From: Pelomyxa schiedti
Lineage: Eukaryota; Protista; Evosea
Reading direction: 5' to 3'
Length of the DNA stretch: 64,000 bases
NCBI GenBank assembly: GCA_020536535.1
Contig: JAHLWZ010000864.1
Location: 1-64,000, forward strand
The position numbers and the translations under genes are program-made. Below the pieces are notes generated by a model that saw only the letters and a program-made list of their open reading frames with translations, ran no database searches and was not told the origin of the DNA. Position 1 is the first letter of the stretch; every line of letters begins with the position of its first letter. Shown one piece after another: positions 58,561-63,858 of the stretch.

Positions 58561-61535
58561 TGGGGTGTTGCCTGGGATACTTAGATCATGCAGCTGTCAC
58601 TAAATTCCGCTACACCAACTCCCTTGTGACAACCTGGGAATCCAATGCCTCTTAAAATCACTGACTTACAATCTTCCTTGAAAGCAAATGGCTACTGAGA
58701 ACACACCCAAGTTCATGACTGAAGCATGTATGGACATCAGCCTTGGAATTCTTGATGTTGGGGTGTTTGTACCCTCTGTTTGTACACTGCTCCCACAGTC
58801 TCTCACTCAGATATTTTTCGATACAATTATGGTGAATGCATTGTGCCTTACATTTTTTTGGTGTGAAACACTCCTTATTTCCCTTTTATCTAATTCCGTA
58901 CCTCCAGTTTGTGGCACTCTTGCTTACAGCTTCCTTGTCTTTTTGAAAGAGCCATCTTTTCTACTGTGAGGACAGTAATGATATAGTGATCATATTCTAT
59001 CCCAAAGCAGCTGGCAAGGGCTAGACCAGATTCAAGAAGCCTAGTGTGGGTTGAAACCCAACTGGACAGCCAAATCCCAAGAGACATACCCCCCCTTCCC
59101 CGAAATCCCAACCAAAAGCACCTTGTATGGCACAAATAACTTAACCTGTGACTCCCGGTGGAGTGAGAGAAAGAATGAGGGAAAACCTTACTCAACAACT
59201 ATAACAAGAAGCTCAACCCCAATCCCTCAATTAACAGAAACCAACATTGAAGCAGCTATCATTTCTTGCAAAATCAGTCCTGGTGCCTGATGGGATTTGC
59301 TTTGCAGCATACTGACCCTCTGAAAGCTCAACTATGCCATCCAAATCAGACTGGTTTCTTTGAAGGACGACTCGTCATCAACAACATTATGGCAGAATTA
59401 TCCAACAACTAATACACCCTCAAACACCACAAAGATTTCCAAGGCCTGCCATAACTTAGATCAGAGTATCAATAACACACACATATCTTGGGACAATCAT
59501 AGGGGTGTTCTAGATCACAAACCTCATGCAAAATACAGAAGCATTGCTCCAGAACGTTGAGCAGATGATTAACAAGGCCCAGCTCCAGACATTATACCCA
59601 AGGTCATTGGTCTCCAAAGGAAAATCGTGGCTACCACAATATTGGGACTGAATATTCCAAAATTTTAAGAGACATACCTCCTTCCCTGAATTCCCAACCC
59701 AATATGCAAATGCTGAACCTATTGCCAACAACCTAACTTGCAATAGTGCAGTACTCCAAACCCATAAATTCACCTATTTATCTAATCAAACTAAACTGTT
59801 GGAAGGATGATGTTCCTATTTATCAAGAACTTACAAATGGCTGACCTTAAAGGCAGTTGATTCTTATCCTTGTGGAGGGTATGAAAGATAAATACAATCT
59901 GGTTCATTCTACTGAAGCTCAGAGGAATTTCTACAGAGACCCTGGAATGTTGAAGTGTGTTGCAGGTTGATGTTTGTTGTTCTGTGATGCAAGTAGTGCA
60001 TCTGTGCTCCTTGAGTGCCCATTTACCTTTGGTGCATTTTTTTGATGTATGTGTAATGTCCATTGGAATTAACATGCAATAGCACATTCTGGCTATGAGC
60101 ATCACAGATGTGGTGTGTGTTGTGGGGGTTTAGTTGTTTCCCAGTTCAGAAACTGATGCAGATGTGTCTGTGAACTTGCTTGTCTGACTACCATAAATTC
60201 TGTTAACAGAATACTTGAGTTGCCAAATGACTTGAATTTCTCAGATAGGGTTCTAGTATATCAAACCAGTGATTCACTGTGCACAAAATGCTGTGGCGGC
60301 CAAATAGAGTTTCTGCTGATTACAGTAGGTGTCTGATTACACAAAAATTTCTTCATGTTTGTATGTGATGTGCAGACTTGGCATCATATTTGCTAGAAAC
60401 TCCACACTCAATCTTGTGTGACGTTGAGTGCAAGACACAATTGTTGGGGGCTCTAGGTTCTTCTTTTCGTTGGCTGAGAGTCAAAAAATCTGACTCAGGA
60501 TCAATTTAGGGAATTAGGATTGGGATTCTACTGTGACCACAATGAATAAAGAAGTGTGTTGTATGTTGTTCACAGGGACATGAGAAATAAAGAGAGCTAT
60601 ACTCCTCACAGATACAGCTTCCAAGAAAGGCTTAGAATATGTGGTATGGAAATACAAGTATTTTGGTGTTGACTTTTTGCCTAGTGGAATTTATGAATGG
60701 CTATCTAGTGTTTTGCAGTCTATGCAGGATAGACACAGAACATTTGAGATCAAATAATCAACATACTGGAAGTATTACCAAAGACCGGAAATTCACTTAG
60801 TGGTGACCCTCAACAAAAAAGAACCCGATATTATCTATCTGGATCCACACTGCAAGCAATATGGATCTTGATGTAGCTAGCCCTACAATCAAATTTAATT
60901 TAAATAATTTTTCACTAGACATACAAGGGGATATCGACCCCTCTTGCAATTGGCATTTCGTAAGCAACATATTATCGCGGCCCTGTTCAGGAACCTCTCG
61001 TGCATTTTACTTTGCCCCAGTTCCACGAAATCTGTCCCAACTTCGTATCTTATTGTCATACAGGTGAATCTATTTGCACCAATACCATCAAATTCCCAAC
61101 TGAGAAAGAATTCTGGAACCATTGATCATTTGCACTACATATTAGATCAAGGGATCCTTGCTCCATTAAAGAACACACCATTTCTTTGTAAGAAATATTT
61201 CTGCTGTATCCTGAAGTCTTGACCCTTATCAATTCCGCTAAGTTCGACTTCCATGTGTTGGCTCACTTATGATGGCAAGTGATTGACCCATCTTCAGCCA
61301 GTCTTCTTTCCAATGCATTTCAGTAACCTGGGAATGGCGGGTCAGATCCTGCTGGGGGTTGCCACAGTGTAACACATCGATAGAAAAGAAAAGCTCAACC
61401 GATACAATACAATAAACAAAGGAGCCGCAGCGAAGCAAGGCCAATCAAGACCCTAGTCTGGTATGACTCTCACTCACAGTGTCATGGATTCTCATTTTAT
61501 AATCTCTTCTTATTGCTGGCTCCATCACTACCGTG

Positions 61536-61753
61536 TCAGTCCAGCTTGAAAGGCTTTCTGACTCGTTTTCTGGGGCAGGTTGAATCTGCTGTTGGTTCGT
61601 CCTCATCATACTCTCCCTCATCATCTTCATGTGGTCCCAGGCTTGCACCTGCGGGACACTGGTGCACTCCCAGATGGGGCAAAAACTGCTTCCCTGATTT
61701 GTGAGTTTGGGTGCACAGACAGCTTGGTAAGCCTCTGTACCCACTTCTCATTT
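61536..61753 (-). pseudogene. Diverged, frameshifted copy of the importin-alpha-like 3' exon
   Basis: 61597-61753 aligns by eye to 38100-38271 in the same orientation, with an internal indel that shifts the frame. Confidence 0.85.
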
Positions 61754-61986
61754 ACCGGCATAACAAGATTCCAAGAGGAACAAAGTAATAAAGAATATGA
61801 AGTGGGGTCAGCTCACAGTGACTTGTTGCGGTTTTCGTCTTCGAATCTGCTCTCAATAACTTTTCGACATGCTGCTGGAGAAAAGCGTGTCCTTTTATCA
61901 CCCCTTCCAATTCCTTTCCATTCTTCAAGCAACACTGTTGTTAAAAGAGAGCTTTTTTTTTATTCATTCAACTCTACAATTTATGA

Positions 61987-63858
61987 CTATGATTTTGGAG
62001 TGTGTGCTGGGCAAAACAGCAGACCCAACAGGGGTGCGTGGATGCAAGAGTCAGCCCTCAAATATGTATTGCAAGTCTGGCATTTAGCACAGGACCGGTG
62101 GCATGTGACTGCCAGCTTAGCCATTTCCATCTTATGAACCGGCTTCTTACACACAACACACAATGACCGCGGAATTCCGATGAGAGGTGGTGTGAGGGAA
62201 TTGTTACTGTAATTCAAGTTGATGCTACGGGATGGAGAGTGATCAGGGCAGTAAATGAGGCCCTCTGAGGCCTGCGATACATCAACTCCATGGTTCAGGT
62301 ACATATGGCCCAGCTGTTTATTGCAGGTGGAGCACTTGTAGCATGTCAGGTGCAGTAGAAGGTACCCGGCTTTGCATGTAGTAGCTACAGAAAGTATTGG
62401 CCGGTGGCAAATCGGGCAGGTTCCAACTAGCTTTCGGGTTTTTGAGCCATCAACATATATTCTAGGGTGCAGTTTCACAAGAAGCCCACCGTCTGGAGTG
62501 AGGTGCCAGTGGAGTAGGCAATAAGCACCTTCGTAGATGCTTGTGGTAGGTCCCTGATAGGAACCGACCCTTGCTGCCTTAGCAGGGAACAGCTTTGTGA
62601 GCTCGCGTGTCAGTCTCTCAACGAGGCCGGTTATTTGTGCTGTGCCTCCTACTAAAATAATATTGCGCATGAACCACCACCACGATCCACCAAGGCGGTT
62701 AAATACATCAGTCAGAAGCTCATGCAGGCCCAGGCCAGTGCGGCCGGCAAGAGCGGGCTTGAACAACACCTCAGCACTCTTAAACTTCATCTCCTTGGTG
62801 ATAGTGACCGTTTTTCCAGAGGGGAGATGTAGTGTACAGTTCTCACTGTTGGCAGTGTTATTCAACTCGTTTTCTGGGTCCTGGGCAATATAACAGAGCC
62901 TGTTCTTGGCCTCGTTTATTGTCTCATAGTCAGCTGACCAAGCCGTATCATCATTTGGAAGACCCAAAAGGTGCATCAGTTGAAGGGTGATGTGCCTTCC
63001 TCCAATTGTGTTCTCCAGACAAACTCCCCTTGGAACTGCGTGATATAAACTGTCAGTACCATCGTCTTCCTCCATTCTAAGAGGTTCTGCATGACAGCTG
63101 CTCTCACCAATCCTAACAAAAAGCCGCCAAACTCTTTGACATGCACCCTCATAAAGCCAATGTAGATACAGTGGTGATTGAACAACAGACAGTGAATGTG
63201 CCCCTAAGTAATCAATGAAAATTTCTGATAGCCCAGCCCGGAAATCCGGGTTGACTTGAACAGGTTCCACCACAAGGACCTTGTATTGTATTATTCCACT
63301 TCATATCTTTATGGATTCCAAACCTCACATCCATGTGGATCAACTTCCATCCTAGAAAAAGCCTCCTCCAGAATAATTCTCAAATGCTGCCAATTTGGAA
63401 TGTTTCCACCTATACCAATTACATTCTTGGTCTCCAAAATATCATCACGATGTGACGACGTGTAACTCGTAGAGGGCTCCACAGGGGTGTTTGTTTCTCC
63501 CATAATTTGAACCTGTGGCACCCACATCCGATCCAAACGCAGCAGACTCGCAATGTTCTCCAGCGCAAGAGCAGGCAACTGTCTCACCAAACTTGAGGCA
63601 CCAGCTCTCACGTGAGTTCCGCACAAGAAACTCATAAACGGTTGCCTCCAGATTCGACACAATCGCGTTGAAATAACAAAAACTAGTGTTACCCATAAGT
63701 ACCAAAGAGACCAACGAACAGTCAAACTAGAAAAAAAAAACAACGCAGGTACCCTTCTTCTCCTCTGCCTCTTCGTCGTAAATCCCACATCTTATGTTAC
63801 GTGCTCCTATGTGAAACACCACATTCTGTGGTCGTTTTTCCCCGGCGTCCGTAGTCAT
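61987..63858 (-). CDS. Divergent actin-fold protein with two C-terminal LIM domains
   Basis: ATG at 63858 (NVVFHIGARNIRCG), GGNIPNWQHLRIILEEAF, IGGRHITLQLMHLL, INEAKNRLCYIA, SAEVLFKP and NIILVGGTAQITGLVERLTREL, followed by two CxxC-x16/18-HxxCxxCxxC-x24/19-CxxH LIM motifs in the same open frame. Two introns near the 5' end. Confidence 0.88.

Follow-up and report, generated by a model that had tools for sequence, protein, structure and literature searches.

The subject of this report is a gene on the minus strand, at positions 63858-61987, of a 64,000-nucleotide stretch of the Pelomyxa schiedti genome (hereafter the window). It is one spliced, transcribed gene of three exons that encodes a 585-residue protein, P0001, in which a divergent, complete actin fold is followed by two LIM domains, and which belongs to a very small family with two uncultured relatives. 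P0001 may be classed as an orphan actin-like protein with a new and conserved domain architecture; its sequence is already public, being deposited in GenBank under the sole name 'actin [Pelomyxa schiedti]'. We hold with moderate confidence that P0001 serves as a scaffold that is derived from actin, is non-catalytic and contains its own LIM adaptor, and that it probably acts on or near the actin cytoskeleton, a function that we infer from the features described below.

In a three-frame translation of the minus strand, the actin-like peptide was split into three pieces, and the open reading frames (ORFs) included a long one at 61987-63273 (428 codons) and a short one with an ATG start at 63727-63858, both on the minus strand. 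When the long ORF was used as query in a word-index protein search, only P0001 was returned, encoded on a contig of 68,264 bp whose coordinates are identical to those of the window. The joint translation of the exons 63858-63753, 63682-63324 and 63279-61987 is exactly P0001. The spliced product used throughout this study was the database protein, and the exon translation served as a check. Both introns, of 70 nt and 44 nt, have GT..AG borders, and the gene is organised as follows.

Exon 1, 63753..63858, minus strand: begins with the ATG at 63858; comprises codons 1-35 and the first base of codon 36; includes the P1 phosphate loop.
Intron 1, 63683..63752, minus strand: 70 nt, GTACCT...CACTAG; based on the deposited model and on homology that extends across its junction.
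Exon 2, 63324..63682, minus strand: residues 36-155; covers the last part of the first sheet of subdomain 1, the subdomain-2 insertion and a conserved NW motif (W133).
Intron 2, 63280..63323, minus strand: 44 nt, GTTTGG...TACAAG; contains an in-frame stop and has a length that is not a multiple of 3.
Exon 3, 61987..63279, minus strand: residues 156-585 and the TAG stop (61989-61987); the remainder of the actin fold, the two LIM domains and a tail of 4 residues are read in one frame without interruption.

The C-terminal half of the actin fold and both LIM domains thus reside in a single exon without a stop. The locus was present in four public runs of one study, and DNA contigs from two runs and RNA contigs from two runs were colinear with it. 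The single-cell RNA-seq contig X3#11 joins position 63277 to position 63322, which removes intron 2 with borders reading CT..AC on the plus strand, equivalent to GT..AG on the minus strand. This contig is therefore derived from spliced RNA. Upstream of the splice junction it is colinear with the genome over 63322-63593. For this reason, we rejected the idea that residues 84-96 of P0001, 13 residues that are extra relative to the related proteins, represent an unspliced intron. A contig from the second RNA run, X4#12, extends unbroken over 62890-61980, that is, from about residue 285 within the actin fold to just beyond the stop codon. Exon 1 is homologous to the N-termini of the two relatives, P0002 and P0003, both of which are encoded by uninterrupted frames. 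An earlier sequence-only reading of this DNA had proposed that the actin-like and LIM parts form a single product, and this is borne out by the open third exon, the RNA contig running from the actin fold to the stop, the splicing of intron 2 and the two uninterrupted relatives. Transcripts separating the two parts were not seen among these contigs.

Some minor features of these contigs may be mentioned here. The RNA-library contigs of the two runs both stop at 61979/61980, 7-8 nt beyond the TAG, where the next genomic sequence is A-rich; this suggests that the 3' untranslated region (UTR) of the actin-LIM gene is extremely short, with the reservation that such contigs cannot prove a transcript end. 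Relative to the window, the contigs from the DNA runs carried 63463 T>G, which would result in Y109S in the disordered subdomain-2 insertion, as well as, within the T-run of intron 1, the change 63744 C>T and the loss of 6 nt at 63736, while 63536 A>G, synonymous at L85, was found in one run only. At the exonic sites 63463 and 63536, the RNA contig matches the letters of the window. These differences represent allelic or cell-to-cell variation, or differences in assembly.

The actin part was identified by several approaches. The Pfam Actin family (PF00022) was matched over residues 112-392 with 79.8 bits (cutoff 27) and an E-value of 2e-22, and PDB actins were matched by sequence at E-values of about 1e-16. 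An AlphaFold2 (AF2) model of P0001, built from an alignment of 64 sequences, had a mean predicted local distance difference test score (pLDDT) of 71.4. The means of 10-residue blocks were 82-97 across most of residues ~120-410, with dips to 62-78, and confidence was low in the subdomain-2 insertion and in the LIM region (pLDDT 30-60 in the latter). The best 50 PDB matches to this model in Foldseek were all conventional actins (E-values of about 1e-23, template modelling (TM) scores of 0.73-0.80 of the target). A comparison with 48,161 representative structures by VIA-align likewise ranked actin first (Z 33.5, root mean square deviation 2.8, 325 residues, 22% identity, TM 0.78). It was followed by Arp4 (Z 30.7), Arp7 (30.5) and Arp3 (29.7) of the actin-related proteins (Arps), the other Arps and the bacterial actins ranking lower; altogether, Arp4, Arp7, Arp3, Arp6, Arp8, Arp1 and Arp9 spanned Z-scores of 30.7-25 at identities of 14-20%. 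The E-values from Pfam, PDB and Foldseek place the actin identity of P0001 far beyond chance, and the four-subdomain actin fold that the sequence-only reading had expected was found by AF2, Foldseek and VIA-align alike.

Actin-fold domain, 62485..63825, minus strand: residues ~12-420, supported by Pfam PF00022, AF2, Foldseek and VIA-align; spans both introns.

The identity of this domain to actins is about 22-28%, and its closest counterparts both by sequence and by structure are conventional actins, not the members of any Arp class. Outside the family, the closest matches are by name a mixture of divergent actins, among them 'actin family' proteins of bacteria and 'actin-like' proteins of insects, and none of the names of these nearest matches points to an Arp class. 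The actin part of P0001 may thus be regarded as an actin-derived fold outside every Arp class and is provisionally filed here as an orphan.

The nucleotide-binding site was assessed in an alignment of P0001 with 61 other actin-family sequences. The features that stand out in this comparison are the following.

P1 phosphate loop, 63813-63799, minus strand: HIGAR, residues 16-20 (DNGSG in actins).
Subdomain-2 insertion, 63650-63444, minus strand: residues ~47-115, family-specific, ~55-70 residues in place of the DNase-binding loop (D-loop) region.
P2 phosphate loop, 63100..63114, minus strand: RIGES, residues 211-215 (DSGDG in actins).
Post-P2 insertion, 63075-63046, minus strand: MEEDDGTDSL, ~10 residues, 224-233, family-specific.
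GGT motif of subdomain 3, 62641..62649, minus strand: residues 366-368, retained.

The degenerate loops, the retained GG motif and the insertions in subdomain 2 and behind the second loop had all been noted in the sequence-only reading, and all were recovered here. Moreover, the degeneration of the phosphate loops holds for all three proteins of the family. In P0001, P0002 and P0003, respectively, the P1 loop reads HIGAR, EVGAR and DIGGS and the P2 loop RIGES, SVGEV and GGDAA; the position of actin Q137 is occupied by Q, H and T, and that of H161 by H, H and S. D154 is absent from all three proteins, S14 is replaced by Ala or Gly, and G15 by Arg or Ser. For comparison, D11 is present in 54 of the 61 other actin-family sequences, S or T at position 14 in 53, and D or E at position 154 in 46. 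The conserved phosphate loops combined with the catalytic Q137/H161 of the actin family are thus not found in these proteins. In addition, the motif at the hinge between subdomains 1 and 3, around actin residues 143-148, is rewritten and carries an insertion, while K/R18 is kept and the hydrophobic-plug region is of unchanged length. As judged from these motifs, the degeneration of the loops would speak against a conventional ATPase actin, and not against the actin fold.

About 20 residues behind the actin fold, the chain continues into the LIM part. The positions of an actin fold and two LIM domains in one frame had been given correctly in the sequence-only reading, the limits of LIM1 (62418-62239) and LIM2 (62160-62002) being exact.

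LIM1, 62239..62418, minus strand: residues 443-502, ligands C443, C446, H465, C468, C471, C474, C499 and H502.
Linker between the LIM domains, 62161..62238, minus strand: 26 residues, predicted to be disordered (pLDDT < 50).
LIM2, 62002..62160, minus strand: residues 529-581, ligands C529, C532, H549, C552, C555, C558, C578 and H581.

Both LIM domains of P0001 possess the full ligand set C-x2-C...H-x2-C-x2-C-x2-C...C-x2-H, and the 16 zinc ligands, 8 per domain, are invariant in all three proteins. The LIM pattern applied here was C-x2-C-x16-23-H-x2-C-x2-C-x2-C-x16-21-C-x2-C/H/D, with eight zinc ligands. Over both domains and all three proteins, the first loop comprises 16-18 residues and the second 17-24, the upper value belonging to LIM1 of P0001 and being slightly above the usual LIM range. 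The stretch from the last ligand of LIM1 to the first ligand of LIM2 is 26 residues long in P0001, and 18 and 15 in the relatives. The Pfam LIM family (PF00412, cutoff 22.9) scored LIM1 with 29 bits when the C-terminal piece was the query and with 22.8-24 bits for longer queries, and it scored LIM2 with 14.3-19.5 bits, which is under the cutoff. When a profile of the three LIM regions was compared with the PDB, all 15 matches were LIM proteins. With the family profile, LIM2 matched the LIM domain of EPLIN (E-value 7e-7) and LIMD2 (6e-4), and LIM1 matched LMO2 (3e-5) as well as LMO4 and Lhx4. An AF2 model of residues 432-585 alone, based on the three-sequence alignment, had a mean pLDDT of 70.8, and the Foldseek matches listed for it were PINCH1, CRP1, LMO2, MICAL1, Lhx4, EPLIN, Tes and unnamed chains of two flagellar-microtubule entries. 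The top PDB matches to the LIM region in a single-sequence search, which were designed 'Pizza' propellers, were rejected as artefacts, because they were sums of six sub-significant repeats across the LIM1 loop and the linker and disappeared when the family profile was used.

To define the family, 1.84 billion representative proteins were scanned with HMMER, which gave 2,347 matches at E-values of 0.001 or less. Besides the query, only two of these matched from end to end, namely P0002 (577 aa, 36% identical, E-value 1.5e-84) and P0003 (573 aa, 35% identical, E-value 8e-57). P0002 is encoded by an uninterrupted ORF on a 5.2-kb metagenome contig (L001) of the Joint Genome Institute (JGI) that has a GC content of 61% and intronless genes; a Pex2/Pex12-like gene and ankyrin-repeat genes are its neighbours, and its source is therefore taken to be a eukaryote. 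P0003 is likewise encoded without interruption, on a contig of 1.7 kb (L002, 49% GC) from a Logan-assembled run. Each of the two is unnamed and the sole member of its own 90% cluster, and both have the same actin-LIM-LIM layout as P0001. The matches below the family, with E-values of 1e-27 and weaker, cover the actin part only, and where a non-family match shows two matched stretches, it is a tandem actin and not a LIM fusion.

The three proteins share more than a layout. Common to all of them are the subdomain-2 insertion, in which H59, R61, G63 and S66 are among the conserved residues, and the post-P2 insertion, as well as two motifs, W-x-x-G-x-C-x-R-V-x-R-L at the subdomain 1-subdomain 3 hinge and WWWF/WYYF. 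Their overall pairwise identity is 33-36%. Since the identity amounts to 51-55% in LIM2, compared with 27-51% in LIM1 and 33-35% in the actin core, LIM2 is the most constrained segment. Word-index protein searches with exon 3, the family alignment and P0002 added no further members, but these blanks are weak since the profile search missed even P0002 and P0003. Two scans of metagenome contigs, with the family alignment and with P0002, added none either; L001 was not recovered in these scans, the collection evidently lacking that record.

The next-best matches of the scan include P0004, P0006 and P0007 from Anaeramoeba ignava and A. flamelloides, which are chains of 761-895 aa with two actin-family regions each and which have been named 'actin-7-related' or 'actin-10-related'. 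Also among the closest non-family matches are P0008 and P0010 from Streptomyces and Nocardia. These are annotated as 'actin family protein' or 'actin, cytoplasmic 2' on actinobacterial contigs of ~90-600 kb, and they are eukaryote-like actins in bacteria.

The view in the sequence-only reading that no actin-LIM family has been characterised stands, as there are three such proteins among the 1.84e9 representatives, and full-text literature searches retrieved no paper on an actin-LIM fusion or on P0001 and no described family. What that reading had called an 'undescribed system' is better described as a single protein of a very small family. Several known proteins resemble P0001 in part. Like P0001, the orphan Arps, such as mammalian Arp7A/ACTL7A and the orphan Arps of the Dictyostelium actinome (PMC2441452), have a full fold of low identity to actin, are lineage-restricted, are not assignable to Arp1-11 and are presumed to be structural rather than polymerising subunits. 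Arp7A cooperates with Tes and its tandem LIM domains, but there the LIM domains belong to a separate protein and bind to an N-terminal extension of the Arp (PMC3064208), whereas in P0001 they are fused C-terminally in the same chain. Arp7A is, furthermore, 43% identical to actin, compared with ~22-28% for P0001 with its degenerate loops. Filactin of Dictyostelium is similar to P0001 in that it links an amoebozoan domain of the actin family to an unrelated module of the cytoskeleton. It differs by its long N-terminal extension and by an actin domain with very high homology to conventional actin (PMC2441452), whereas P0001 combines a C-terminal LIM extension with a highly divergent actin domain and a degenerate ATP site, and is therefore not of the filactin type.

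The eight-ligand double zinc finger of P0001 is shared with the tandem-LIM adaptors and single-LIM cytoskeletal proteins (LMO2/LMO4, LIM1+2 of Lhx3/4, LIM2-3 of Tes, LIM4-5 of PINCH, EPLIN/LIMA1, LIMD2, MICAL1 and CRP), none of which has an actin fold. Two LIM domains in tandem are the usual peptide-clamping unit, but their linker has only a few residues in LMO and Lhx, as opposed to 15-26 and variable in the P0001 family. Lastly, certain actin-related proteins of Asgard archaea, with ~500-575 aa, have a layout like that of P0001, in that an actin-family domain precedes C-terminal zinc modules. Among the nearest clusters by language-model features, the ESM Atlas lists two of Promethearchaeota (65 and 79 members) with Actin and DZR, at a score of 0.85 that is under the reliability mark of 0.9, and P0019, a 575-aa protein from a Logan contig found in the HMMER scan, has an actin-family domain followed by DZR/Zn-ribbon modules. 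The Asgard proteins are archaeal and carry zinc ribbons, not LIM domains, and homology of their tails with that of P0001 is not shown. The resemblance is thus possibly a parallel design at most, and a lead only; the logic of an actin fold with a zinc-finger tail may have had an independent origin in Asgard archaea.

How could such a protein work? Actin-family proteins that serve as structural subunits without an ATP cycle are known among the nuclear and orphan Arps, and among the adaptors on the actin cytoskeleton, LIM domains are the most common. The sequence-only reading had put forward a possibly nucleotide-independent actin-related scaffold with LIM-mediated targeting, a proposal that stays hypothetical. 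In the scaffold that we favour, the actin fold would no longer be an ATP-driven polymerising subunit and would instead provide a rigid protein-binding body, as in these Arps. This non-catalytic, non-polymerising reading is suggested by the degenerate phosphate loops, by the replacement of the D-loop region, which actin needs for its longitudinal contacts, and by the rewritten hinge motif near the barbed-end cleft. Because the actin chain terminates in subdomain 1, beside the barbed-end cleft, the LIM pair would hang from that face of the actin body. There, it would most likely clamp an extended peptide, either of a cytoskeletal partner or of the disordered insertion of P0001 itself, in the manner of the tandem LIM domains of LMO4-Ldb1, Lhx3-Isl1 and Tes-Arp7A. 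LIM2, which resembles cytoskeletal LIM domains of the EPLIN, MICAL and CRP type and is the most constrained segment, would probably carry the key contact. Clamping of extended peptides, which is typical of tandem LIM domains, has been documented for LMO4, Lhx3 and the LIM2-3 domains of Tes bound to the orphan Arp7A. The latter is the closest known case in which an Arp is functionally paired with LIM domains, though in trans (PMC3064208).

Several observations weigh against the scaffold, or against parts of it. All three proteins retain G13, G156 and the GG of GGT, and the loops of P0003 are less degenerate, with D11 and D157 kept; degenerate loops do not prove a loss of nucleotide binding, and the title of 5tgc, an entry for the Arp7/9 structure, includes the words 'bound to ATP', with the Arp7 chain listed with ATP. 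The LIM fold itself is assigned with moderate confidence, given the shallow alignment, and the placement of the LIM domains relative to the actin body was not confidently predicted in the full-length AF2 model. With only three sequences, surface conservation is unreadable. The choice of a cytoskeletal rather than a nuclear site is a guess from the weak similarities of LIM2. Lastly, RNA contigs did not cover exon 1 or intron 1, where the gene model consists of the deposited annotation and homology to P0002 and P0003.

The kept glycines and the loops of P0003 (DIGGS, GGDAA) are also what one would expect if P0001 were a working actin isoform that binds nucleotide and joins or co-polymerises with actin or caps a filament end, so that the LIM domains sit on filaments. 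The preservation of the whole fold, of K/R18 and of the length of the hydrophobic-plug region, together with conventional actin being the best match by sequence and structure, is consistent with this idea. It is nevertheless unlikely, as D154 is lost in all three proteins, S14 has become Ala or Gly and G15 Arg or Ser, Q137 is not conserved (Q, H, T), a ~55-70-residue insertion replaces the D-loop region, the hinge motif has been rewritten around actin 143-148 and carries an insertion, and the identity to actins is only 22-28%. A related idea, to which we would likewise give a small chance, is that of a self-addressed pseudo-actin whose pointed-end face docks on the barbed end of a filament or into the lattice, while the LIM pair, attached at the protein's own barbed-end face, blocks growth and recruits partners. 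If true, this would be a filament-end or lattice adaptor that is free of an ATP cycle and made from actin itself, so far in Pelomyxa and two uncultured eukaryotes. Rather improbable is a nuclear Arp-like module, in which the fold would dock on a helix of the helicase-SANT-associated type, as in Arp4, Arp7, Arp8 and Arp9, and the LMO-like LIM pair would bridge to transcription or chromatin factors. Arp4 (Z 30.7), Arp7 (30.5), Arp8 and Arp9 do follow close behind actin in the structural ranking, and LIM1 matches the nuclear adaptors LMO2, LMO4 and Lhx4. However, the differences in this ranking are small and every actin-family fold scores high, the conserved LIM2 matches the cytoskeletal proteins EPLIN, LIMD2 and MICAL1, and orthology to any Arp class was not found. 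A nuclear localisation signal was not seen either, though no search aimed at one was made.

The sequence-only reading had also hinted at the binding of strained F-actin. Many LIM proteins bind stressed filaments, and P0001 would in that case be a tension sensor in which the LIM pair behaves as in zyxin, paxillin or FHL, with the actin fold as effector. This hint is disfavoured. Full binding of strained F-actin requires three or more tandem LIM domains with linkers of 7-8 aa, a 24-aa linker abolished it in zyxin, and two tandem LIM domains bind weakly (10.1101/2020.03.06.980649). With only two LIM domains and 26, 18 or 15 residues between them, the P0001 family falls outside this rule in both number and linker length, which makes the mechanism very unlikely. 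The least credible alternative is that of an artefact or a dying gene, that is, a chimeric assembly or gene model of an actin pseudogene and a LIM gene, or a decaying actin paralogue. It might be entertained because the protein is highly divergent, is present as a single copy from a single-cell-genome assembly and has an exon 1 without RNA contigs. However, it has already been largely refuted, as actin and LIM parts share one exon without a stop, the locus is colinear in DNA contigs from two further runs and in RNA contigs from two runs, and intron 2 is spliced. Two intact relatives, which come from other data sets, have this architecture together with the insertions and motifs, at an identity of 33-36%, and therefore long purifying selection must have acted on the family.

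The interest of P0001 lies in the fusion. Arp-type actin folds and LIM domains are, to our knowledge, known to meet only in trans, for instance in Tes-Arp7A. Their natural fusion, which is conserved, is a 'Rosetta stone' and suggests joint action of an actin-shaped body and a LIM clamp, as one unit, in these anaerobic amoebae. P0001 is compact and offers a tractable object for identifying the binding partners of an actin fold with a degenerate nucleotide site and the targets recognised by two LIM domains joined by a long linker. The general impact of these findings is moderate, as the family consists of three sequences and its function is inferred.

With respect to the genomic neighbourhood, a paralogue of the actin-LIM gene was not found in the window or in the end of its contig. 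Directly upstream of the gene, past the end of the window (L003:1530-4260), lies a gene for a GH3 glycosidase with an Fn3-like domain (669 aa), and a GH39-like gene is located downstream on the Pelomyxa contig (L003:9681-11561). There is no synteny between the GH3 gene upstream in Pelomyxa and the Pex2/12 and ankyrin genes near P0002. The convergent neighbour on the plus strand is transcribed, as an RNA contig joins 61600-61725 to 61775-61945 with removal of a 49-nt GT..AG intron; this contig ends ~42 nt from the stop codon of the actin-LIM gene. The deposited model of this neighbour (window ~60861-61549, 104 aa, no Pfam match) stops short of the RNA contig, and the spliced segment is therefore either a 3'-UTR intron or part of a mis-modelled last exon.

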